A model generated the notes under the pieces. The model saw only the letters and a list, made by a program, of their open reading frames with translations. It had not been told where the DNA came from and searched no databases. The translations under genes were made by a program, and so were the position numbers. Shown in pieces: positions 25,416 through 55,301 of a stretch of DNA of 64,000 nt; position 1 is the stretch's first letter, and each line of letters starts with the position of its first letter. The stretch lies in IMG/VR virus record IMGVR_UViG_3300021963_000021, positions 186,001 through 250,000 of that record; one strand, given 5' to 3'.

Positions 25416-25649
25416 ATGTTAAAACTATTAGCCAAACTTTTTGGTGCCAAACCAGCTGCTCCAGCAGAAGCAGAAGCTCCATATAAAGTAGAAGCTCCGG
25501 CGGTTAAGGAAGAAGCGCCTGCTACTCCTGTCGCTGAAAAAGCAACGCAAGCGGTTGTGGAATCTATTGCTCCAGCTAAAAAGCCACGTGCTAAGAAACC
25601 AGCTGCTCCAAAGAAACCTTCAACTCGTAAACCGAAATCAAAGGCCTAA
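25416..25649 (+). CDS. Ala/Pro/Lys-rich histone-like protein
   Basis: GGGAG RBS, TAAATA upstream, basic KKP repeats at the C-terminus. Confidence 0.55.
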   Translation: MLKLLAKLFGAKPAAPAEAEAPYKVEAPAVKEEAPATPVAEKATQAVVESIAPAKKPRAKKPAAPKKPSTRKPKSKA

Positions 25650-26663
25650 TCTTTTAGCTTCTTCGTAGAGTGCGAACGATGCTAGATTTTTAGCCTTGCT
25701 TTCGCACATGATATCGAAGTTTTCTCTAAAACTCAGAGCCCATTCATTAGCTGCTGTATTCCAGTAGAAGTTTGAGTGTGCTCTGAGTTTTGCTTTCTTA
25801 TGACCGCTTTCTAAGAGGGTCTGAAGAGCGGGACGGGTGTCTCCGGAATGTTCTCTAAGTACGTCTTCCCTAGAAACAGAATAGTGTATGACAGGGCGAT
25901 TACCACGCCAACTGTCACTAATCCTTTTAACACGATCGTCAGTTGCTTCAATATATTCTCCGGTTTTAATCCAATGGTGATGTATGTCTAACACTAGAGC
26001 ACAGTCATTGACTAGTTCAATGCTGTCTTCGATGCCCCAGGTCATTTCGTCGTTTTCGATAGTAAGTGTGTTACGAGCTTCGGGCGTCATACGAGCCAGC
26101 GCAGCACGTATTCCCATTGGGCCTTGTCGGCCTGCGATATGAACGTTGATTTTAAAGTCTTGAAACGTTTTGCCAAATCCCATCCAGCGAGCCATGTCCA
26201 CATGATATTCAAACTCCTCTATTGATCGATTTACAATATCTGGGTTATCAGATGCCAGGACAGTAAACTGACCAGGATGAAAAGACAACCGTACATTCCT
26301 CTCGCGAGCCACAGCCCCCACTTGCCCAAATGCTCTCTCGCAATAGGCTCGTACATCGGAACGCCGCCAATAGCTGCCCCAAGTAGGCTCAGTGTAGACA
26401 GGAAGTATATCGCTGCTGAGTCGTACCATTCTAAGATCTTCATCTTGTTCTCCTACCAGAGTAACAAGTTTACGAACAGCTTCTATGTTGGATTCCATTA
26501 AATCCCATAGTTTCTGTTCCGCAACATCCCTGGTTTGTCTATTTAACCAGGCTACAGTAGTGCTGCCAGTATTATACTGTTTACAGTTGTCCTTCTGCTT
26601 GATGCCGTCTATTTGACTAGGACCGTCGATCCACTTACAGGCAAAACCTATTCTTTTGGGCAT
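25638..26663 (-). CDS. uvsE: UV damage endonuclease UvsE/UvdE
   Basis: IGFAC, RLSSD, SFHPGQF, INVH, LTIENDE, VLDIHHH, IHYS, DIMCESKAK. Confidence 0.92.
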   Translation of the reverse strand: MPKRIGFACKWIDGPSQIDGIKQKDNCKQYNTGSTTVAWLNRQTRDVAEQKLWDLMESNIEAVRKLVTLVGEQDEDLRMVRLSSDILPVYTEPTWGSYWRRSDVRAYCERAFGQVGAVARERNVRLSFHPGQFTVLASDNPDIVNRSIEEFEYHVDMARWMGFGKTFQDFKINVHIAGRQGPMGIRAALARMTPEARNTLTIENDEMTWGIEDSIELVNDCALVLDIHHHWIKTGEYIEATDDRVKRISDSWRGNRPVIHYSVSREDVLREHSGDTRPALQTLLESGHKKAKLRAHSNFYWNTAANEWALSFRENFDIMCESKAKNLASFALYEEAKRLGL

Positions 26664-28526: not shown

Positions 28527-29089
28527 TAGCCCTCGTAGATTGCCGAATTGGCTCCGTGCTCAAACACTTCGACTGATTTTACACGAACACCTGGATTGAC
28601 AGGATAACGAGATTTGATAAATGAATCATCACTTAATTGAGTTCCGTGTTTCATAGTATCTAACAATTCAGTCATTTTTTCGTAACACATTTTAGCAAAC
28701 ATTTCACAACCAACTCCTGGCACAATGCGCAAATCGCAAATGCCTTGTCGACGATATGGCTCTACCTGTACACGATCTGGCTTACCGTCGTGTTCTGGAT
28801 TTGAGCTCCAACCTGACATTTCTTTGAAACGATCTAGCATTGGATCGTCTTCTGCGATTACCAAAGTATGATCGAACATATGATCTGCCCATTCTTTGAA
28901 CAGTTTAAGACCGCCAAAGTCCATACACCAGTTTTTATCATCTAGTGTTTCGCTTTCAAAGATTAATCTGATACCGATTGAGTATCCGTGTAGTGTTGAA
29001 CAGTGAGAATGAGTCGCTCTCCACTGCCTAAAGCAGCAACTTAAACCCCTATCGTTGCCGTATGTTTTTGTTGAATAGAACTTAGCCAT
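28526..29089 (-). CDS. queD: 6-carboxytetrahydropterin synthase QueD
   Basis: HSHC..LHGY, DFG.LK, FDH, V.VFEH..NSA.Y. Confidence 0.88.
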   Translation of the reverse strand: MAKFYSTKTYGNDRGLSCCFRQWRATHSHCSTLHGYSIGIRLIFESETLDDKNWCMDFGGLKLFKEWADHMFDHTLVIAEDDPMLDRFKEMSGWSSNPEHDGKPDRVQVEPYRRQGICDLRIVPGVGCEMFAKMCYEKMTELLDTMKHGTQLSDDSFIKSRYPVNPGVRVKSVEVFEHGANSAIYEG

Positions 29090-29120
29090 CTCTTGCCTCC
29101 TATGCTTATGAGTAAGTTTG

Positions 29121-29168
29121 ATGACATGCAGAATGTTTATAGAGGGTTGAATGCCATAGAAGTCCTCT
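29121..29168 (-). promoter_or_regulatory. candidate preQ1-I-like pseudoknot in the queD 5' UTR
   Basis: AGAGG/CCTCT stem followed by ATAAA; loop ATGGCAT complementary to downstream ATGTCAT. Confidence 0.4.
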
Positions 29169-29190
29169 TTGTGTCTGTGTATGTTTAATA

Positions 29191-29781
29191 TTATACTTGA
29201 AGATATTTATAAGTCAATAGCTCTACGTTGATTTTTTTCCATTTCTCGGGAATAATCCAATTTTCAGAATTGTATATTTTAAATCTTATGTTTGGAAAAC
29301 ATTCAAATACTTTTTCAGTTTGATGTATCCAGTAAGATGGATCTATGGCATGTGCGTCTGCTTTAACATAATTGCCGGTGCCTTTGTATATATTATTGAC
29401 TTTCTTGTCCGTGTCGTAGAGATCGAACCCTAACAGCCAAACTTCTTCAGAGGCTAGTTGAGCAGCTAACAATACAGCGTATGGTCCACTGCCCCAGTGA
29501 AACGCTTCGTCTGCTCTAAGATCGCCGCTGTATGGTAAATCAGGTACTGCTTTTACTTTTGAATCAGTGAAATGACTTAACCACATAGATCTTGTGTAGA
29601 TATTTTTTATAGGAGTTGGCAGTGCTTCTTTGACCATCCTGCGATCAACACAGACTAAATGATCAACTGTATGATCTCTAGCTATGGCGTTACAGCCCAC
29701 GGACGTGTGATTATCAAGAATGGATTTGAGATCTATAAGGGCTCTGCTTTCCCCGTTACCGATTGCTAATACTGCCGACAC
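29191..29781 (-). CDS. DUF115/sialyltransferase-like protein
   Basis: IGNGES, GCN, GFDL motifs. Confidence 0.45.
   Translation of the reverse strand: MSAVLAIGNGESRALIDLKSILDNHTSVGCNAIARDHTVDHLVCVDRRMVKEALPTPIKNIYTRSMWLSHFTDSKVKAVPDLPYSGDLRADEAFHWGSGPYAVLLAAQLASEEVWLLGFDLYDTDKKVNNIYKGTGNYVKADAHAIDPSYWIHQTEKVFECFPNIRFKIYNSENWIIPEKWKKINVELLTYKYLQV
29204..29211 (-). promoter_or_regulatory. T4 late promoter consensus TATAAATA
   Basis: Exact match upstream of the queD leader. Confidence 0.65.
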
Positions 29782-46110: not shown

Positions 46111-46188
46111 TGGCCTGCCCGGAGGGATTCGAACCCCCGACCCACAGCTTAGAAGGCTGTTGCTCTAATCCTGCTGAGCTACGGGCAG
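46111..46188 (-). tRNA. tRNA-Arg(TCT)
   Basis: Cloverleaf, loop CTTCTAA, CCA. Confidence 0.95.
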
Positions 46189-46193
46189 AAATT

Positions 46194-46269
46194 TGGAGCG
46201 GGAGACGAGTCTCGAACTCGCGACATCTTGCTTGGAAGGCAAGTGCTCTACCAACTGAGCTACTCCCGC
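46194..46269 (-). tRNA. tRNA-Gly(TCC)
   Basis: Loop CTTCCAA, CCA. Confidence 0.95.
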
Positions 46270-46275
46270 AATGTC

Positions 46276-46479
46276 TTAGGTTGGAAAATATTTTTCCATA
46301 ACTTCCAATTTGTCCATATACTCAGCAATCTGAGCGACTTCTTTTTCGATAGCATCCATAATATCACTGTGTTCGTGGATTGCTGTTGGGTTGTTCAGCA
46401 TCACTTCGACATTCATTTTATGTTTAGTGATGTGTGATCGAAAGTGTTCTTTCGATGCTTCAATGAGTTCTTTACGCAT
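46276..46479 (-). CDS. hypothetical protein (start MRKELIE)
   Basis: Coupled to the upstream ORF stop. Confidence 0.55.
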   Translation of the reverse strand: MRKELIEASKEHFRSHITKHKMNVEVMLNNPTAIHEHSDIMDAIEKEVAQIAEYMDKLEVMEKYFPT

Positions 46480-46736
46480 TATGAGTTCACCGTTTCGCTG
46501 TTTTGCTTCGAATTCCACTCTTGTTTGGCCTTTTGATAGGCGTCTTCGCTTAGGCCATGCCAACCAATACAGTCGCCTGTAGGACTACGACCACAACCGC
46601 AAGTACCTTTTTTCATATCTTCAACTTTTGGAGTCACTTTGTCTTTCCTAAAAATTAAATCGTAATTGTTGTTAAACGCTTTCGATGATGCTCTTGATTG
46701 TATAGCATCACCAGTTATATCGTTTCTTGCTACCAT
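46479..46736 (-). CDS. CDGSH-like Fe-S motif protein
   Basis: CGCGRSPTGDCIGWH (3Cys-1His). Confidence 0.55.
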   Translation of the reverse strand: MVARNDITGDAIQSRASSKAFNNNYDLIFRKDKVTPKVEDMKKGTCGCGRSPTGDCIGWHGLSEDAYQKAKQEWNSKQNSETVNS

Positions 46737-46752
46737 CTACATATCCTCAAAT

Positions 46753-46831
46753 TGGTCCGGGAAGTGGGATTCGAACTCACGATCTCCTGCTCCCAAAGCA
46801 GGCGCTTTAAGCCAGACTAAGCTACACCCGG
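46753..46831 (-). tRNA. tRNA-Pro(TGG)
   Basis: Loop TTTGGGA, CCA. Confidence 0.9.
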
Positions 46832-46835
46832 AAAT

Positions 46836-46909
46836 TGGTTGCGGGTCCTGGAATCGAACCAAGGACTAGAGCTTATGAGACTCTCGAGATACCCCTTCTC
46901 CAACCCGCT
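46836..46909 (-). tRNA. tRNA-Met(CAT), initiator-like
   Basis: Loop CTCATAA, unpaired 1:72, fMet-like D arm. Confidence 0.8.
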
Positions 46910-46916
46910 ATAAACC

Positions 46917-47492
46917 TTATAGGATTCCTTCTTTGGTCAGTGTTGCTACTGCTTCATCGCTTAGAGGAATCTCTGTCTTAATGTTAAGTTCAAGGACTTC
47001 GTCATTGATCTTTTGTTTCTGCTTGCGTAGATTGCTAAGTTCAGTCTTGAACTTGTCAATGTCTCCTGTGCTGAGCACAGAAGTGTCTACGGTATCACTG
47101 TAGCCGTAAATGCTACGACGACTAGTTTCGTTCTTGTCGTTGCGTATCTTATCCAACTTGCCGTTGATTACGACCAAGTCAGCGACTGGTGCGTGTCTGA
47201 CCATTGCTTCTAGCTGACTGATACGCTTGTCAATGAAAGCCGCACGAGTCAACAACAGGTCGATTCCGCTCTGGGCGTTTGCCGCACCTACTAGGCCGCG
47301 GATGTTATATTGCGCAGCCAACAACAGGCCACGACGCTGATCGTTTTCCAACAGCTTCTTGTTGGCAGCATCAATTTCGGCCTTTGCGTCCTGGAACTCA
47401 TTAAGCTGGACATCCAACTTAATATCGATATTTTTCAAAGCATCGCTGATGCTGTTCTGGACTACGTTTGCTTTACGAAGAGTGATGTTCAT
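46917..47492 (-). CDS. hypothetical coiled-coil protein
   Basis: 191 aa with its own promoter and AAGGA RBS. Confidence 0.65.
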   Translation of the reverse strand: MNITLRKANVVQNSISDALKNIDIKLDVQLNEFQDAKAEIDAANKKLLENDQRRGLLLAAQYNIRGLVGAANAQSGIDLLLTRAAFIDKRISQLEAMVRHAPVADLVVINGKLDKIRNDKNETSRRSIYGYSDTVDTSVLSTGDIDKFKTELSNLRKQKQKINDEVLELNIKTEIPLSDEAVATLTKEGIL

Positions 47493-47515
47493 GTGTTTTT
47501 CCTTATGATTTATCT

Positions 47516-47544
47516 ATTATACTGCCTTGACATGCTGTTGTCAA
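47516..47544 (-). promoter_or_regulatory. sigma70 promoter TTGACA-N17-TATAAT
   Basis: Perfect consensus. Confidence 0.8.
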
Positions 47545-47545
47545 C

Positions 47546-47816
47546 AAAAAAATGACGGATCGGTAAAAGGTCAAGTAATAGACCGGACAATAGACAGTGG
47601 AAGGTTTGTAATCTTCCTATGACAATGTACAAGGTACAAAGCACAGAGGTCTATATATTTCCGATTAACAAATGACATTCTATTAGGGATCGGATCACAT
47701 AAACACGGACAGTTTTCAAGACTGTTTGCGTTAAGTTCGGATTAGGCTTGGAGCCTAAGCCATTTTGTCCATCCTCATCTACCTTTTACTTCACCGGCTA
47801 GTTTTAATAAACTAGC
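47546..47816 (-). ncRNA. candidate structured ncRNA (about 270 nt)
   Basis: Nested long-range stems and several hairpins; no ORF on the minus strand. Confidence 0.5.
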
Positions 47817-47821
47817 AAAAC

Positions 47822-47897
47822 TGGTGCCGGTTGTCGGATTCGAACTGACCACATCCGCCTTACAAGAGCGGCGCTCTACCTAATGAGCTAAACCGGC
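47822..47897 (-). tRNA. tRNA-Thr(TGT)
   Basis: Loop CTTGTAA, CCA. Confidence 0.95.
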
Positions 47898-47920
47898 ATA
47901 AAACTATATATCAAACAACT

Positions 47921-48012
47921 TGGCGGAGATAGTTGGATTCGAACCAACGGTAGAGTTTAACCCCTACGACGGTTTAGCAAACCGCTGCCTTCAGCCACTC
48001 AGCCATATCTCC
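47921..48012 (-). tRNA. tRNA-Ser(GCT)
   Basis: Loop TTGCTAA, long variable arm. Confidence 0.95.
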
Positions 48013-48016
48013 GTAT

Positions 48017-48106
48017 TGGCGGAAGCGGTGAGATTCGAACTCACGGAACATTTCTGTTCGTCGGTTTTCAAGACCGGTGCAATCAGCCAGACTCTGCCAC
48101 ACTTCC
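48017..48106 (-). tRNA. tRNA-Ser(TGA)
   Basis: Loop CTTGAAA, long variable arm. Confidence 0.95.
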
Positions 48107-48111
48107 ATAAA

Positions 48112-48187
48112 TGGTAGGTCCTGACAGTCTCGAACTGCCGACATCCGCCGTGTAAAGGCGGCGCTCTACCAACTGAGCTAAGGACCC
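48112..48187 (-). tRNA. tRNA-Val(TAC)
   Basis: Loop TTTACAC, CCA. Confidence 0.95.
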
Positions 48188-48269
48188 AAAAGATCTATTC
48201 TGAAACACACTGGCTGTTGCTTGTCATTGTCTTTAACTACCTCTCGGTGGCGGTAGACCAATGTGTTTT

Positions 48270-49165
48270 AGAATAGTGTTAAGACTGAGATTACATCTTA
48301 ACCATAAGCACCTCTAGCATTACCGTACACCTTGCGAGCATACGTTCTCTAGATATCCACTGAGCCCTATTGCTAGGTATCCCAGTCTGCTTACAGTATC
48401 GCCGTTTTAAGTCAGGCAGTAGACTTGACGCCATATGCTATTCTACACCATCTATCCCGTTAACCTTGCGAGCTATTCGAGTGCGCTAACACTCTACGAA
48501 ACTTCCAGTATAAACTAATGTCACCTTGCGAGCTTCATTAGACTTGATTGTGTTACCACTCAAGTATTAGATACTTTTCACATATGACCGAGGCAGTCTT
48601 TGCGTTTTTGTTTAATGGCTGGAGTTGAACCAGCAACATTCTGTTTAATAGACAGACGATCTACCATTGATCTACATTGCAACCTACCGTGATGAGCTAC
48701 CTCTGTTGCTGTATACTCTTTTGGAATACACAATACAACTCACCACATACCTTTCCTCTCGCGGAGTAATCAGTGATGTTTCACGACCAGTGTCCTGCGT
48801 CAAAACAGTCCACCGCCCATTTACATTGCGCTAAAGCCCTTAGGAGCGACCCCTCGGACAATAACACTACCCTTTCTCATACCAGTTAATAAGTTGGTTT
48901 TGTATGGAAGTCAGCACCACCTGTTACTTTTCACGCACCCTGGTTCCCTTGCGGGCCAGTCGATACGCATTCTTCCCCATACACTTACTTGGCTGTTACA
49001 TCCACCGGTTTTGTCAGTGAACGCATCCTCACGGATGTGAGCAGGCTTGTTTACACGAACCATTGCTGGCGCTAGTATGTAGGCATTCTAGCTTTGGGTC
49101 GATCGCTCGACTTATTCTTCGTAGACGGCGGACCGCCTACAGGATGATAAACCACCCTAGAATTT
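48270..49165 (-). ncRNA. large structured ncRNA, GOLLD-like
   Basis: About 0.9 kb with no long ORF inside a tRNA array; repeated GCAA-capped hairpins and long-range stems. Confidence 0.55.
48611..48681 (-). pseudogene. tRNA-like domain (anticodon ATT) embedded in the large ncRNA
   Basis: Perfect D, anticodon and T arms; two acceptor mismatches; no CCA. Confidence 0.7.
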
Positions 49166-49251
49166 TTAAACCATATAAAAACACACTCACGGACATGGCT
49201 TGTTGGATGCAGCCTGCCTAACCGAACCAACTTCGGCAGTGTGTTTTTATA

Positions 49252-49335
49252 TGGTGCCCCAACCGAGACTTGAACTCGGACGCACTAGGCACTGGCTTCT
49301 AAGACCAGCGTGTCTACCAATTCCACCATCGGGGC
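49252..49335 (-). tRNA. tRNA-Leu(TAG)
   Basis: Loop CTTAGAA, long variable arm. Confidence 0.95.
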
Positions 49336-49393
49336 AATGTTTGTCTAACAATGTTAAAGAGCGTTACGCTGTTTTGTTTAACAGCATATGTAT

Positions 49394-49422
49394 ATTATAT
49401 CTTCTAACTGCCGCTGTGTCAA
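49394..49422 (-). promoter_or_regulatory. internal sigma70 promoter TTGACA-N17-TATAAT
   Basis: Perfect consensus upstream of tRNA-Leu(TAG) and the large ncRNA. Confidence 0.8.
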
Positions 49423-49452
49423 CACATTCTGGACATATTAGAAAATATTTTT

Positions 49453-49526
49453 TGGTGCCCAGACCAAGAATTGAACTTGGAATAATCGCTTATCAAGCGA
49501 CCGTTATACCATTTAACTATCCGGGC
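49453..49526 (-). tRNA. tRNA-Ile(GAT)
   Basis: Loop TTGATAA, CCA. Confidence 0.93.
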
Positions 49527-49535
49527 ATATTGAAT

Positions 49536-49750
49536 TTGTTGTAGTAGTGCCACCATCGTTATTGGCACCATTCACCTGGATTAACAAAGCCCGGGCAGGA
49601 CTCGGTACGTCACTTGGGATACTAGTCCAGTTAGCAACCAATCTGCGCCGATCTTCCGATCAGCCGGGAGTTGAACCCGTCCCCTTCTACTATTTCGGTA
49701 GTTCGAACTTACCTAGATAGCGTGACATTCTCTTGCTGACACTACAACAA
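49536..49750 (-). ncRNA. candidate structured ncRNA (215 nt)
   Basis: 10-bp terminal stem, two T-loop-like hairpins, GGAA tetraloop. Confidence 0.55.
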
Positions 49751-49754
49751 AACT

Positions 49755-49829
49755 TGGCTCCCCAGGGTGGGATCGAACCACCGACAAACGGATTAACAGT
49801 CCGCTACTCTACCTCTGAGCTACTAGGGA
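49755..49829 (-). tRNA. tRNA-Asn(GTT)
   Basis: Loop CTGTTAA. Confidence 0.95.
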
Positions 49830-49835
49830 ATAAAT

Positions 49836-49910
49836 TGGTGGAGGATAGCGGAATCGAACCGCTGACTCAAGCGTGCAAGGCTAGTGTTTTCCCAATTAGA
49901 CTAATCCCCC
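49836..49910 (-). tRNA. tRNA-Ala(TGC)
   Basis: Loop CTTGCAC. Confidence 0.93.
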
Positions 49911-49914
49911 AAAT

Positions 49915-49990
49915 TGGCGCCTCGTAGGGGAGTCGAACCCCTGTGTTCCGCTAGACAGGCGGGCATAATAGACCGTTATATGAACGAGGC
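49915..49990 (-). tRNA. tRNA-Asp(GTC)
   Basis: Loop CTGTCTA. Confidence 0.92.
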
Positions 49991-50000
49991 AAAACTTGTT

Positions 50001-50076
50001 TGGTAGCAGTAGTTGGACTCGAACCAACGATAAACACCGTATGAAGGTGCCGCATTAGCCGCTATGCTATACTGCC
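50001..50076 (-). tRNA. tRNA(CAT), elongator Met or Ile2
   Basis: Loop TTCATAC, paired acceptor. Confidence 0.85.
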
Positions 50077-50080
50077 ATAT

Positions 50081-50225
50081 CCATTTAGAAGTAACACAGT
50101 TTACTATTCTCTTGCTACCGAATGTGTAGTACCTTACAGGTCTACGTTACTAGTATCATCGGCTTTCCGCTTCGAACAAGGTTAGGTCTGATCATGACCC
50201 GACGAGCTGTGTTACTACTAAATGG
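50081..50225 (-). ncRNA. candidate structured ncRNA (145 nt)
   Basis: 18-bp terminal stem with one mismatch; multibranch interior. Confidence 0.55.
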
Positions 50226-50228
50226 TAA

Positions 50229-50305
50229 TGGTGTGCCCTCTGGGATTCGAACCCAGGACCCTCTGATTAAAAGTCAGATGCTCTAACCTACTGAGCTAAG
50301 GGCAC
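50229..50305 (-). tRNA. tRNA-Lys(TTT)
   Basis: Loop CTTTTAA. Confidence 0.95.
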
Positions 50306-50360
50306 AATCGTTTACCAGATTTACCATCATCTCCCATGGTAATTTCCTCCTTAAAAAACT

Positions 50361-50436
<76 letters not shown>

Positions 50437-50442
50437 ATTATA

Positions 50443-50518
50443 TGGTACACGGTACGGGAATCGAACCCGTCTTTCCGCCTTGAAAGGGCAGCGTCCTCAA
50501 CCGATAGACGAACCGTGC
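50443..50518 (-). tRNA. tRNA-Glu(TTC)
   Basis: Loop CTTTCAA. Confidence 0.95.
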
Positions 50519-50546
50519 GTAAAAAATTTTCAATTGTCAAAGAACG

Positions 50547-50623
50547 TGGAGCACAGGGTGGGACTCGAACCCACGAATCAACAGTTTTGCAGACTGCGCC
50601 ATTGGCCTCTCTGGTACCTGTGC
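50547..50623 (-). tRNA. tRNA-Cys(GCA)
   Basis: Loop CTGCAAA, U73. Confidence 0.95.
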
Positions 50624-50637
50624 GTTAAAGTCTATCA

Positions 50638-50666
50638 AGTATATGATAAATCAAACAGCTTGTCAA
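50638..50666 (-). promoter_or_regulatory. internal sigma70 promoter TTGACA-N17-TATACT
   Basis: Near-consensus, upstream of tRNA-Cys. Confidence 0.75.
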
Positions 50667-50751
50667 CTACTATTTTAGGTTTTTGTCGATGATGATCATC
50701 AAAACCGCTAACATGATTAGAACTGCCAATGCCCCATGTGAGTCTCCTTGT

Positions 50752-50825
50752 TGGTGCTCTAGCCAAGAATTGAACTTGAAATTCAGTCTTACCAAGACTG
50801 TGTTATACCATTTAACTACAAGAGC
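50752..50825 (-). tRNA. tRNA-Thr(GGT)
   Basis: Loop TTGGTAA. Confidence 0.93.
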
Positions 50826-50826
50826 A

Positions 50827-50905
50827 TGGTACCCCTGCTCAGATTTGAACTGAGAACAACTTCTCCTTTTGAGAGAGACGACTTTACCAATTTGTCCACA
50901 GGGGC
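50827..50905 (-). tRNA. tRNA-Leu(CAA), short variable arm
   Basis: Loop CTCAAAA; variable region of only about 7 nt. Confidence 0.8.
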
Positions 50906-50911
50906 ATACTT

Positions 50912-50987
50912 TGGTGCTGCCTCCTGGGATCGAACCAGGTTCCTCGGTTCTTCAGACCGGTGCTATGACCACATCAGCTAAAGCAGC
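50912..50987 (-). tRNA. tRNA-Phe(GAA)
   Basis: Loop CTGAAGA. Confidence 0.93.
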
Positions 50988-50997
50988 ATTTAATCTT

Positions 50998-51072
50998 TGG
51001 TGGATCTTGTAGGATTTGAACCTACGACCAACAGCGTGTCGAGCTGCTACTCTACCACTGAGCTAAAGATCC
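50998..51072 (-). tRNA. tRNA-Val(GAC)
   Basis: Loop TCGACAC. Confidence 0.9.
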
Positions 51073-51073
51073 T

Positions 51074-51147
51074 TGGGGTGAAACCGGGAATCGAACCCTG
51101 TCTACCTGTTTCACAGACAGGTGTGCGACCACTACACTAGTAACACC
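51074..51147 (-). tRNA. tRNA-His(GTG)
   Basis: Loop CTGTGAA, G-1:C73; some stem mismatches. Confidence 0.85.
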
Positions 51148-51152
51148 ATTAT

Positions 51153-51229
51153 TGGCCGGCCCGGAGAGACTCGAACTCCCAACCTCTAGTTTCGAAGACT
51201 AGCACTCTAATCCATTGAGTTACGGACCG
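51153..51229 (-). tRNA. tRNA-Arg(TCG)
   Basis: Loop CTTCGAA. Confidence 0.93.
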
Positions 51230-51235
51230 ATAACT

Positions 51236-51309
51236 TGGCTGGGGATGATGGATTCGAACCACCACAGACGGAATCAAAATCCGTAGTCCTACCATTAGAC
51301 GAATCCCCA
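51236..51309 (-). tRNA. tRNA-Gln(TTG)
   Basis: Loop TTTTGAT. Confidence 0.93.
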
Positions 51310-51313
51310 ATAT

Positions 51314-51387
51314 TGGCACCGGACCAGAGACTCGAACTCCGACGAACGGTTTTGGAGACCGTCATGCTGCCATTACATCAGCCCGAT
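51314..51387 (-). tRNA. tRNA-Trp(CCA)
   Basis: Loop CTCCAAA; D stem ATGT/GCAT gives U11:A24. Confidence 0.93.
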
Positions 51388-51388
51388 A

Positions 51389-51742
51389 TTATTTGATTGT
51401 GTCGTACCGAGTATCTTCGGTTTCGATAAAGTTGACCATTCCAACAGAGATATGATATCCTTCTGTTTTCATAGCTTGATATGCTTTTTGATACACGTCT
51501 GATTCTAAGAGATTCTTTTGAAAATCTCTAGCTTTAAACATGTCTTTAGAAAAGAAGTAGACGTTTTCTACTTGTGTTGTAGCATCCCAATCCCATGACT
51601 GCTTATCTTCTATAAGCCCTTGTTCTACACAGTCTTTTAGAAACGCAACGAATTCTAAGGAGATATCTTCTCTAAAGTTGATATCATCTTGGGTCTGAAA
51701 TTCAGCTCCGTAGTAAATTTGCTGTATTTGTGTAGCTATCAT
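51389..51742 (-). CDS. hypothetical protein inside the tRNA array
   Basis: 117 aa, AAGGA RBS, TAAATA motif upstream. Confidence 0.55.
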   Translation of the reverse strand: MIATQIQQIYYGAEFQTQDDINFREDISLEFVAFLKDCVEQGLIEDKQSWDWDATTQVENVYFFSKDMFKARDFQKNLLESDVYQKAYQAMKTEGYHISVGMVNFIETEDTRYDTIK

Positions 51743-51768
51743 GATTGGGATCCTTTTAGCTATTTATC

Positions 51769-51855
51769 TGGTGGAGGAAGTAAGATTCGAACCTACTAGT
51801 CCCTAAGAAAACAGATTTACAGTCTGCCGCACCCCTCCAACTGTGCCGTTCCTCC
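51769..51855 (-). tRNA. tRNA-Tyr(GTA)
   Basis: Loop CTGTAAA, long variable arm. Confidence 0.95.
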
Positions 51856-54200: not shown

Positions 54201-55301
54201 TCACAAGGAATCACCTTGGACAAAATTTTTAATTTCAGATACTGCTGCTTGATTTAGTAAAGTCGATTCTCCGCACTGGTGAGCGCACCTATCTAATCTA
54301 TTACAATTAGTCCAACTGTCTTTTATCTCGTTGAATATTTTACTGTTGACGATGTCTGATAGGGCTGTGTGATTTAAATCAATGCTTTTTAGCCCACCAT
54401 TGTTTTCTATCATTTCAAATAGTTTAGCTCTGTCTGGGTGAAGCTCGGGTTCGTAGCCATAGAAACGATCCAACAGCCATCCGCAGGGCAACACATAGCC
54501 TTCTGCTGACACACAGACTAGTCCAGTTTTCTGTGCCATACAATTTATGTTAGTGTTCTTAAGGTACGAATCGTAATCGCCAAATTTCTCTACGATTTTG
54601 TCATAGACATCATAGCCTCTGTTGAGGTATTTTTTATCAGTGGCAGGTTTAAGCCATCTTATGATTTTGTTATCCTTGTCGTGTACAGGACTTGCGTCTA
54701 TTTTTTTATGTGTTTTATCAATAAATCTAGAAGTGAACTTGACTACGAATCCTTTGAATCCTAATTCAGTACTGAGTTTTCTTGCTGCGTTGACTTGATG
54801 TTCATTGTGCTGGAATACGATATAACTCCATACAGCGTTGCCGCCTGCTTGTATAAAGTTGCGAGCGTTGTCCATAATTTTATCAAAGTCTGTGCCTATC
54901 CTGTAGAGATGATTAGTGTCTTCGAGACCGTCTACGCCAAAAAACACAGTATCCTGCGGTCTAAGAGTCTTGGCTAATTCTTTCCACCAAGCACTACTGC
55001 GAAGGCTTCCGTTAGTTCTTATGGTTATCTGTGCCTGAGACACAGAGTGAAAGTGTTTAACGATATCTATTAGATCAGGATGTACACAGGGATCACCGTA
55101 GGTGCCACACAATCTTATTTCTTTCATGTGTGCTAGTTCTTTTTCTTTGAACTTTTCTCCAATCCATTCAAGGCTGAGATCCACTAACGGTAGTGTAGGC
55201 CAAGTTTTTCCTCCATAGTAATTTCTAATACATTGAGGACAAGACGCATTACACCTTGTAGTGAGTTCAAATTCTATCTGTGTTAGTTTATCGTAGAACA
55301 T
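54201..55301 (-). CDS. radical SAM protein with C-terminal SPASM-like domain (start MFYDKL)
   Basis: CNASCPQC, GTYGDP, RTNG, DGL, C-terminal Cys cluster. Confidence 0.9.
   Translation of the reverse strand: MFYDKLTQIEFELTTRCNASCPQCIRNYYGGKTWPTLPLVDLSLEWIGEKFKEKELAHMKEIRLCGTYGDPCVHPDLIDIVKHFHSVSQAQITIRTNGSLRSSAWWKELAKTLRPQDTVFFGVDGLEDTNHLYRIGTDFDKIMDNARNFIQAGGNAVWSYIVFQHNEHQVNAARKLSTELGFKGFVVKFTSRFIDKTHKKIDASPVHDKDNKIIRWLKPATDKKYLNRGYDVYDKIVEKFGDYDSYLKNTNINCMAQKTGLVCVSAEGYVLPCGWLLDRFYGYEPELHPDRAKLFEMIENNGGLKSIDLNHTALSDIVNSKIFNEIKDSWTNCNRLDRCAHQCGESTLLNQAAVSEIKNFVQGDSL

Follow-up and report, generated by a model that had tools for sequence, protein, structure and literature searches.

The known systems closest to the element examined here are the class I preQ1 riboswitches (Rfam RF00522; B. 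subtilis and T. tengcongensis types; PMC10639078), small H-type pseudoknots in the leaders of 7-deazaguanine pathway genes with a 5-bp P1, a 12-nt P1 loop and a P2 of 4 bp. Their L1 is short and begins with a conserved U, the C closing L2 directly before the P1 3' strand forms a Watson-Crick pair with preQ1, and an A-rich L3 runs directly into a P2 3' strand that overlaps the Shine-Dalgarno sequence or favours a terminator, which makes them OFF switches (PMC10639078). In other H-type pseudoknot aptamers (SAM-II/SAM-V, preQ1-II, guanidine-III, fluoride), all of them in Rfam, the pseudoknot is likewise the whole aptamer, loop-helix triples are likely, and the knot sequesters the Shine-Dalgarno sequence or acts transcriptionally. 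The opposite logic is found in translational ON riboswitches such as the Vibrio vulnificus add adenine riboswitch, a three-way junction in which an aptamer strand pairs with the ribosome-binding site or start region until the ligand locks it into the aptamer and frees the start site. Phage leaders can also be operated by proteins, as in the T4 gene 32 pseudoknot and in the Com activation of Mu mom, a DNA-modification gene switched on by opening a start-codon hairpin. Riboswitches themselves are reported to be very rare in phages: a survey of known classes found only a handful of examples, and its authors asked whether phages use classes yet to be discovered (PMC5473149).

A conserved pseudoknot in the leader of a phage queD-like gene

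We analyzed a 64-kb window of a giant phage genome (IMG/VR record IMGVR_UViG_3300021963_000021, positions 186,001 to 250,000), in which an initial annotation had placed a preQ1-riboswitch-like pseudoknot in front of queD. The structural observation holds: all elements are present on the minus strand. The P1 5' strand AGAGG (29168-29164) pairs with CCUCU (29145-29141) across an 18-nt loop, AUAAA (29140-29136) follows, and the loop segment AUGGCAU (29157-29151) is complementary over 7 bp, one of them G.U, to AUGUCAU (29127-29121), 38 nt upstream of the start codon. Between the strands lie L1, ACUUCU (29163-29158), L2, UCAAC (29150-29146), and L3, AUAAACAU followed by UCUGC (29140-29128). The Shine-Dalgarno sequence AGGAGG (29101-29096) stands 6 nt before the AUG (29089-29087), and in the nested minimum-energy fold its GAG (29099-29097) pairs with CUC (29112-29110). 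The promoter assignment required correction. The proposed promoter TATAAATA (29211-29204) occurs only once in the window, where 4.6 occurrences are expected by chance, and lies in the spacer of a better-supported sigma-70-like promoter at 29217-29190, with TTGACT (29217-29212), 16 nt and TATAAT (29195-29190) giving 11 of 12 matches. This promoter overlaps the end of the upstream 196-aa ORF, whose stop is at 29193-29191. Among 160 related upstream regions, 61 have a promoter of at least 9/12, most often with the -10 box ending 7 nt before P1. No terminator is present in the leader.

The gene below (29089-28526, minus strand) encodes a 187-aa protein with the PTPS/QueD fold (Pfam PF01242, 8.6e-14, 52 bits against a cut-off of 22.4; phrog_2389, 2e-35). 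It does not reach the equivalog cut-off of TIGR03367 (33.9 bits against 89.25), and the zinc motif CxxxHGH is replaced by CxxxHGY, as in 171 of 172 motif-linked homologues. The QueD proteins of Pseudomonas phage Iggy and Flavobacterium phage immuto, to which it is 41-43% identical, are also of the HGY type; their genes sit with QueE and FolE, with QueC in Iggy and a PRT in immuto, and with DpdA in both. Two further genes are probably co-transcribed (28526-27673, minus strand) and keep the same order in related loci: a 52-aa membrane-like protein (phrog_1679; 28526-28368) and a 231-aa glycosyltransferase-like protein (phrog_1962; 28368-27673). QueE-like genes follow the queD-like gene in 17 related loci. 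The genome of the window encodes FolE, a QueE-like protein (73% identical, phrog_2076) and a PRT, while QueC and DpdA/TGT were not found in it; the DpdA protein search returned an empty answer, which in that search carries no information on absence.

A nucleotide search of cultured phages with 2.5 kb (blastn) gave no match, and the fold of the single leader is not above chance (MFE z-score -0.08). Comparison among relatives shows that the structure is far above chance. In 80 viral contigs collected by QueD protein similarity alone, a covariance model finds a full-length copy (44.8-69.7 bits) directly upstream and on the same strand in 78; of the other two, one locus starts inside the gene and one has no leader. 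An independent DNA pattern scan, which did not constrain the first four P1 5' nucleotides, P2 or P3, found at least 120 more contigs, and P1 was complementary in all of them (116 at 5/5 and 4 at 4/5), although positions specified by the pattern are invariant in these sequences by construction. The motif was recovered in 195 of the first 200 fetched viral contigs, giving 150 unique sequences. Twelve unpaired nucleotides are invariant in the RNA-unbiased alignment, whereas the flanks are not conserved and the downstream proteins range from 27 to 100% identity, with 73 of 172 below 40%. C29162 and U29161 of L1 are invariant in the RNA-unbiased set; U29150, C29149, A29148 and C29146 of L2, A29138, A29136, A29134 and UCUGC (29132-29128) of L3, and G29164 of P1 are also invariant. 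A pattern scan of 185,579 prokaryotic genomes produced 19 hits, of which only 6 are real by covariance model, all on MAG contigs of 5.5 to 32 kb, and the other 13 score at most 16.6 bits. The phage's own genome contains no second copy, and none at folE. Iggy and immuto have no leader and no motif despite their homologous QueD.

Covariation of three helices and the start-codon region

An alignment of queD leaders from related phages had been named in advance as a check on the pseudoknot, with absence of covariation counting against it; both stems were found to covary strongly. P1 is paired in 99.3% of cells, 4 of its 5 pairs show changes on both sides, and pair types alternate (AU/UA at one pair, CG/AU/UA at another). 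RNAalifold predicts the same helix on the unbiased set, but recovered only P1 on the full leaders. A MAFFT alignment of the whole core placed P2 out of register (67.5% paired), and a contiguous-helix scan for P2 gave only a modest excess (4.59 against 4.13 bp with swapped tails), because some classes have an internal mismatch. Anchored on the invariant UCA and UCUGC, P2 is ungapped: its five inner pairs, formed by the cores GGCAU (29155-29151) and AUGUC (29127-29123), are 81-93% paired, and the closing pair occurs as UA 58, CG 20, AU 18 and GC 12. The covariation score of 0.604 compares with 0.219 in shuffles (0/500 reach it) and at most 0.233 when the partner is slid.

The P2 3' strand is also complementary to the start-codon region. 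In the window, GUCAUC (29125-29120), which shares five nucleotides (29125-29121) with the P2 3' strand, pairs with GAUGGC (29090-29085), which includes the AUG, to form a third helix, P3. Across relatives, 89.8% of P3 cells are paired, the six core pairs are 98-100% paired, the pair at position -1 occurs as CG 63 and UA 31, and slid controls reach only 26-65%. At least 6 contiguous bp are present in 97.4% of 152 unique leaders, against 24.8% after shuffling. The helix covers the start codon in 105 leaders and only the Shine-Dalgarno region in 45, and overlaps the P2 3' core by at least 2 nt in 144 of 152. Part of the constancy of its 3' strand is not due to RNA structure, since that strand is constrained by coding (AUG GCN). 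Covariation extends over all three strands: genes that begin AUG GCA have loop GGCAU and anti-strand AUGYC, while genes that begin AUG ACU U have loop GACUU and anti-strand AAGUC. The P2 5' strand of the window, AUGGCAU, mimics the start-codon region AUGGCU. P2 and P3 exclude each other, so a stabilised pseudoknot should free the ribosome site. A six-codon upstream ORF in the P1 loop was rejected as a mechanism, because most relatives have no AUG there.

Comparison with preQ1 riboswitches and alternative explanations

The interpretation of the initial annotation, a variant class I preQ1 riboswitch, is only partly supported. A genuine conserved H-type pseudoknot does lie in the leader of a phage queD-type gene, and its 5-bp P1, the invariant C29146, which occupies the position of the ligand-pairing C, and the A-rich stretch after P1 resemble preQ1-I; the WUAWAAA tail recalls the Rfam consensus (...UC CCaCu AUAAAAAA). 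Membership is not supported. Scoring with the Rfam preQ1 models had been suggested beforehand as a test, and neither RF00522, RF01054, RF02680 nor any other Rfam family matches at E<=10 in positions 28900-29400 of the window or in 8 related loci; at gathering thresholds, only GOLLD and tRNAs are found elsewhere in the window and nothing at the leader. A Paenibacillus preQ1-I control scores 34.1 bits (E = 1.8e-5), and our model of the phage motif does not score that control either. The P1 loop is 17-21 nt in relatives, L1 has 4-9 nt, its first nucleotide is A, C or U with conserved C and U at positions 2-3, and P2 has 5-7 bp. The initial annotation had noted the longer loop and the leading A. 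An invariant UCUGC separates the A-tract from P2, so that the nucleotide before the P2 3' strand is a C and not an A, and only one of three preQ1-contacting positions is kept. The P2 3' strand is complementary to the start codon or Shine-Dalgarno sequence 30-45 nt downstream, implying activation, the opposite of all known preQ1 classes.

We consider the element to be an uncatalogued, phage-restricted cis-regulatory RNA at the 5' end of the queD-type mRNA in 7-deazapurine gene clusters that most likely works as a translational ON riboswitch, a reading held with moderate confidence. In this view, an aptamer of about 48 nt competes with a hairpin spanning 29125-29085: without the effector, the anti-start strand would pair with GAUGGC, or with the Shine-Dalgarno sequence in other phages, closing the ribosome-binding site, and an effector that stabilises the pseudoknot would hold this strand in P2 and free the start codon. 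The analysis itself demonstrates the three helices, their covariation and mutual exclusion, the gene association and the restriction to phages; that a small molecule rather than a protein or temperature stabilises the pseudoknot, the direction of the switch and the nature of the ligand are inferences, as no ligand-binding, structure-probing or expression data exist. A conserved aptamer with covarying helices and invariant unpaired nucleotides, joined to two different expression platforms that share a strand with it, and the occurrence of two copies in one gene cluster in front of different genes, are typical riboswitch traits, and the absence of a terminator fits translational control. Against this reading, the nearest-neighbour model cannot score pseudoknots, and forcing the P2 3' strand to stay single-stranded raises the predicted unpaired probability of AUG+3 only from 0.18 to 0.32 and does not open the Shine-Dalgarno sequence (0.42 to 0.36). 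The unremarkable MFE of the single sequence and the absence of the motif from Iggy and immuto also count against it. Our best guess for the ligand is a guanine-like heterocycle of the GTP to pterin to 7-deazapurine route, more likely a precursor such as the FolE product than the end product preQ1.

Among the alternatives, the one that survives best, though unlikely, is a protein-operated switch, in which a phage or host protein, possibly the QueD-like protein itself or another enzyme of the cluster, binds and stabilises or melts the pseudoknot. The same structure and alternative helix apply, the motif is restricted to phages and behaves like a regulon signal within one gene cluster, and the T4 gene 32 and Mu mom leaders provide precedents, which were not tested here, so a protein effector is not excluded. 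Those two leaders have no comparable set of invariant loop nucleotides and no sequence similarity to the motif. A compact pseudoknot with 12 invariant unpaired nucleotides, stems free to covary and interchangeable platforms is the usual signature of a metabolite aptamer, and no RNA-binding protein is consistently encoded next to the motif. Feedback by preQ1 or preQ0 on the phage's own queD is less likely still: the gene is of the QueD type found in phage 7-deazaguanine clusters, but end-product activation of a biosynthetic gene would be odd, and the ON logic makes preQ1, whose binding was not assayed here, a less likely ligand. A ligand-independent element, such as an RNA thermometer or a co-transcriptional folding or mRNA-stability device setting a fixed or temperature-dependent translation level, is also doubtful. 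The P2 and P3 duplexes have similar calculated strength (-5.3 and -6.7 kcal/mol), and in many loci the predicted transcript starts right at P1, yet the invariant loop nucleotides, especially UCUGC, A.A.A and UCA.C, are not needed for a simple helix competition. Chance complementarity, or conservation through recent common descent alone, is compatible with the unremarkable single-sequence fold but is in our judgement refuted by the compensatory changes in three helices, the conservation across divergent proteins and the unconstrained P1 strand being complementary in 120 of 120 pattern hits.

Implications for phage DNA modification

The motif is abundant, absent from Rfam 15 and not described in the literature we could search, including a 2026 noncoding-RNA atlas preprint. 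It precedes, and in our reading controls, the entry enzyme of phage 7-deazapurine synthesis, a pathway that phages use to hypermodify their DNA. A bolder reading, which we regard as possible but somewhat less likely than not, is that this would be the first riboswitch class known only from phages: a small pseudoknot aptamer, distantly preQ1-I-like in shape but with a different pocket, binding a pterin, 7-deazapurine or purine metabolite other than preQ1 (for example the FolE product or a 7-deazapurine base) and switching ON translation of the first committed enzyme of a DNA-hypermodification pathway. Because the pseudoknot strand and the anti-start strand are the same nucleotides, the mechanism is directly accessible to mutation. 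If the element binds a metabolite, it would show how a phage times or meters DNA-modification chemistry, a new ligand or a new way of recognising one, and a compact ON switch of about 100 nt that could be used as a tool.

Sequence of the leader and comparative support for the pseudoknot

The element lies on the minus strand, where a TTGACT hexamer (29217-29212) is followed by a 16-nt spacer containing TATAAATA (29211-29204) and by TATAAT (29195-29190). Downstream of these, AGAGG (29168-29164) is followed by an 18-nt loop, ACUUCU-AUGGCAU-UCAAC, by CCUCU (29145-29141), by AUAAACAU-UCUGC (29140-29128) and by AUGUCAU (29127-29121). A 19-nt spacer then leads to AGGAGG (29101-29096) and to the AUG (29089-29087) of an ORF (29089-28526) encoding a PTPS/QueD-fold protein of 187 aa (PF01242, 8.6e-14; phrog_2389, 2e-35). 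Every element listed in the initial annotation is present, including the 7-bp complementarity, with one G.U, between the loop and the downstream segment, and the observation is confirmed. The promoter had been assigned to TATAAATA, but our promoter scan favors a sigma-70-type promoter with 11 of 12 matches. TATAAATA is under-represented in the 64 kb window, with one occurrence where 4.6 are expected, and is thus not a general promoter word of this phage, although it recurs within 60 nt upstream of the motif in 21 of 160 related loci, usually 11-12 nt before a TATAAT box. The P1 loop also holds a 6-codon uORF (29137-29157, minus strand; AUG GCA UUC AAC CCU CUA UAA), but most relatives have no AUG there, and it is probably incidental to the start-codon mimicry. 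The window is part of a 363,943-bp virus record that CheckV rates as complete.

The single sequence is uninformative: the MFE of the leader is -15.0 kcal/mol, with z = -0.08 against shuffles. Comparison with the leaders of related genes decides the question. A search of IMG/VR with the QueD-like protein returned 350 relatives, of which we retained the 80 best loci, and their leaders show the same motif with obvious compensatory changes. A covariance model built later finds a full-length copy (44.8-69.7 bits) directly upstream and on the same strand in 78 of these 80 protein-selected loci; of the other two, one begins inside the gene and one has no leader. In an alignment of the 50 distinct leaders from this RNA-unbiased set, twelve unpaired or closing positions are invariant: the last G of P1, C and U in L1, the C before the P1 3' strand, and A.A.A and UCUGC in L3. 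The flanks are unconserved. A DNA pattern made from the invariant positions, which left the first four nucleotides of the P1 5' strand, P2 and the whole platform free, matched at least 120 further viral contigs. In all 120 the unconstrained P1 strand is complementary, 116 at 5/5 and 4 at 4/5. The downstream proteins are 27-100% identical to the protein of the window, and 73 of 172 are below 40%; the RNA is therefore conserved across deep divergence.

In 150 distinct cores, 99.3% of P1 cells are paired, and four of the five pairs show changes on both sides, for example AU 123 / UA 23 and CG 99 / AU 32 / UA 19. RNAalifold predicts exactly this helix on the unbiased set. For P2, MAFFT placed part of the sequences out of register, which gave 67.5% paired. 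P2 abuts the invariant UCA of L2 on one side and the invariant UCUGC on the other, and an ungapped 39-column alignment anchored on these brings it into register. The five inner pairs are then 81-93% paired, the closing pair occurs as UA 58, CG 20, AU 18 and GC 12, and the covariation score is 0.604, against 0.219 +/- 0.016 in shuffles (0/500 reach it) and at most 0.233 with slid partners. The two additional A-U pairs of the initial annotation hold in only 34-41% of sequences, and the conserved P2 is therefore 5 bp, extended to 7 bp in the window.

An alternative helix at the translation start

A third helix, P3, was not part of the initial annotation. The nucleotides of the P2 3' strand, together with the next few, are complementary to the translation start. 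In 152 distinct full leaders, the best contiguous helix between the first 14 nt after UCUGC and the ribosome-binding region is at least 6 bp in 97.4%, against 24.8% when the strand is shuffled. It covers the start codon in 105 leaders and only the Shine-Dalgarno region in 45, and it overlaps the five-nucleotide P2 3' core by at least 2 nt in 144 of 152 leaders, and by 4 nt in 84. On a MAFFT alignment of 94 start-codon-type leaders, 89.8% of cells pair, six core pairs reach 98-100% and the non-coding -1 position covaries (CG 63 / UA 31), whereas slid controls give 26-65%. The covariation is three-way: genes that start AUG-GCA have loop GGCAU and anti-strand AUGYC, while genes that start AUG-ACU-U have loop GACUU and anti-strand AAGUC. 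The P2 5' strand is thus a mimic of the start region, and the P2 3' strand can pair with either. In the window, P2 uses 29127-29121 and P3 uses 29125-29120, pairing with 29090-29085. The nested MFE fold contains P1 and P3, plus CUU/AAG and CUC/GAG, the last of which involves the Shine-Dalgarno sequence.

P2 and P3 cannot coexist. The invariant loop nucleotides only make sense in the pseudoknot, so whatever the element senses should stabilize the pseudoknot, which would sequester the anti-start strand and free the AUG. In the second platform type (CCUAUG pairing with CAUAGG) it would free the Shine-Dalgarno sequence instead. While the helices and their covariation are observed in the alignments, the ON switch acting on translation is our inference, as is the kind of metabolite sensed. 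The leader contains no terminator. A conserved aptamer with interchangeable platforms is what riboswitches look like, and so is the presence of two copies in one gene cluster: in two related loci (L021 and L022) copies of the motif lie 1.6 kb apart (L021:1344-1399 and L021:2924-2979, and the same in L022), the first before a 312-aa radical-SAM/SPASM-like gene and the second before the T-fold gene followed by QueE. In many relatives a strong promoter ends 7 nt before P1, so that in this view the aptamer is the very 5' end of the mRNA. The nearest-neighbor model, however, cannot score the knot, and forcing the P2 3' strand to stay single-stranded raises P(unpaired) of AUG+3 only from 0.18 to 0.32 and does not open the Shine-Dalgarno sequence. 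There are no binding or expression data, and a protein effector or a ligand-free competition remains possible. We hold it highly likely that the element is a cis-acting translational switch, somewhat more likely than not that it is a metabolite-sensing ON riboswitch, and unlikely that it is a preQ1-sensing relative of preQ1-I.

Relation to known RNA families and distribution

Comparison with the Rfam preQ1 models had been proposed beforehand as a check on the reading of the leader as a variant class I preQ1 aptamer. No Rfam 15 family matches at E<=10 in the window leader or in eight related loci. As a control, the Rfam PreQ1 model finds a preQ1-I element in a Paenibacillus genome (34.1 bits), whereas our model gives no hit at that element and nothing above 3.6 bits anywhere in that locus. 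Read against the Rfam consensus, the phage motif shares with preQ1-I a 5-bp P1, ...UC before the P1 3' strand and an A-rich tail after P1. It differs in having a loop of 17-21 nt against 12 nt in preQ1-I, a variable base followed by an invariant CU in L1 against a leading U, and an interposed invariant UCUGC against an A-tract that runs straight into CUA. P2 has 5-7 bp against 4 bp in preQ1-I (PMC10639078), and the inferred ON logic contrasts with OFF logic (PMC10639078). We therefore do not file the element under preQ1-I, and the earlier interpretation is partly supported. It works like an H-type pseudoknot aptamer, and its platform works like that of the add adenine ON riboswitch. Elsewhere in the window, a GOLLD RNA (RF02032, 211.6 bits; 48282-48746, minus strand) is embedded in an array of 27 tRNA hits (46114-51855, minus strand), one of which (48614-48678) lies inside the GOLLD match.

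A pattern scan of 185,579 prokaryotic species genomes gave 19 hits, of which only six are real by the covariance model (45-65 bits); the remaining 13 score at most 16.6 bits. All six (L216, L219, L223, L227, L218 and L224) are on MAG contigs of 5.5 to 32 kb from Bacteroidota and 'Rickettsiales' bins, assigned to Bacteroidetes, Chitinophagales, Crocinitomicaceae and 'Rickettsiales MED657'. These are plausibly mis-binned phage DNA, grouped with the hosts, and give a weak hint at the host range. The phage's own genome has a single copy of the motif, and the cultured phages with homologous QueD have none. We found no description of the motif in the literature searched or in one preprint examined for it. 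A review states that riboswitches are rarely found in phages and asks whether phages use undiscovered classes (PMC5473149). The element is a real, strongly conserved, phage-restricted regulatory pseudoknot with a built-in anti-start strand.

The regulated genes and the inferred signal

The protein encoded downstream is a divergent QueD, scoring 33.9 bits against the NCBIfam equivalog cut-off of 89.25. Its zinc-site motif (residues 30-36; 28997-29003, minus strand) is CxxxHGY instead of the canonical CxxxHGH, and HGY is shared by 171 of 172 motif-linked homologues. It is also shared by the QueD genes of Pseudomonas phage Iggy and Flavobacterium phage immuto (L239:3992-4450; L240:3998-4459), which are 41-43% identical and sit in annotated clusters: that of Iggy has QueE, QueC, FolE and DpdA, and that of immuto has QueE, a PRT, FolE and DpdA. 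A QueE-like radical-SAM gene follows the T-fold gene in 17 related loci, and a phosphoribosyltransferase often precedes the motif. A UvdE-like UV-damage endonuclease gene lies at 25638-26663 (minus strand) of the window, and a homologue is found downstream of the motif-controlled T-fold gene in 40 related loci (for example L134:7677-8768), which suggests a conserved linkage.

The phage's own genome carries a 7-deazapurine-type gene set at 158-163 kb (G000:C1 158048-163349; locus L238 8045-13349), which encodes a QueE-like radical-SAM protein (73% identical to the related-locus QueE-like protein used as the query), a phosphoribosyltransferase, a cupin and FolE (GTP cyclohydrolase I). No QueC, TGT or DpdA was detected anywhere in the 364-kb genome, although the empty result of the DpdA protein search does not decide whether that gene is absent. 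The phosphoribosyltransferase suggests, by inference, a nucleotide-level route rather than a transglycosylase route. Eight of the ten radical-SAM (PF04055) hits of the genome are clustered within about 23 kb (G000:C1 240801-263881, from window position 54801 onward), with open frames of 305-491 aa, an unusual density for a phage.

Other genes also lie directly behind the motif in related loci: a canonical HGH QueD in L169, where it stands in tandem with an HGY paralogue behind one motif, a cupin in L158, the radical-SAM gene in L021/L022, and in L170 an unknown 243-aa protein followed by the T-fold gene and QueE. The regulon is therefore the entry into 7-deazapurine synthesis from the FolE product, and as the signal we rank first, by inference, a guanine-like pathway metabolite other than preQ1. 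An ON switch at that point fits a precursor or a need signal better than the end product.
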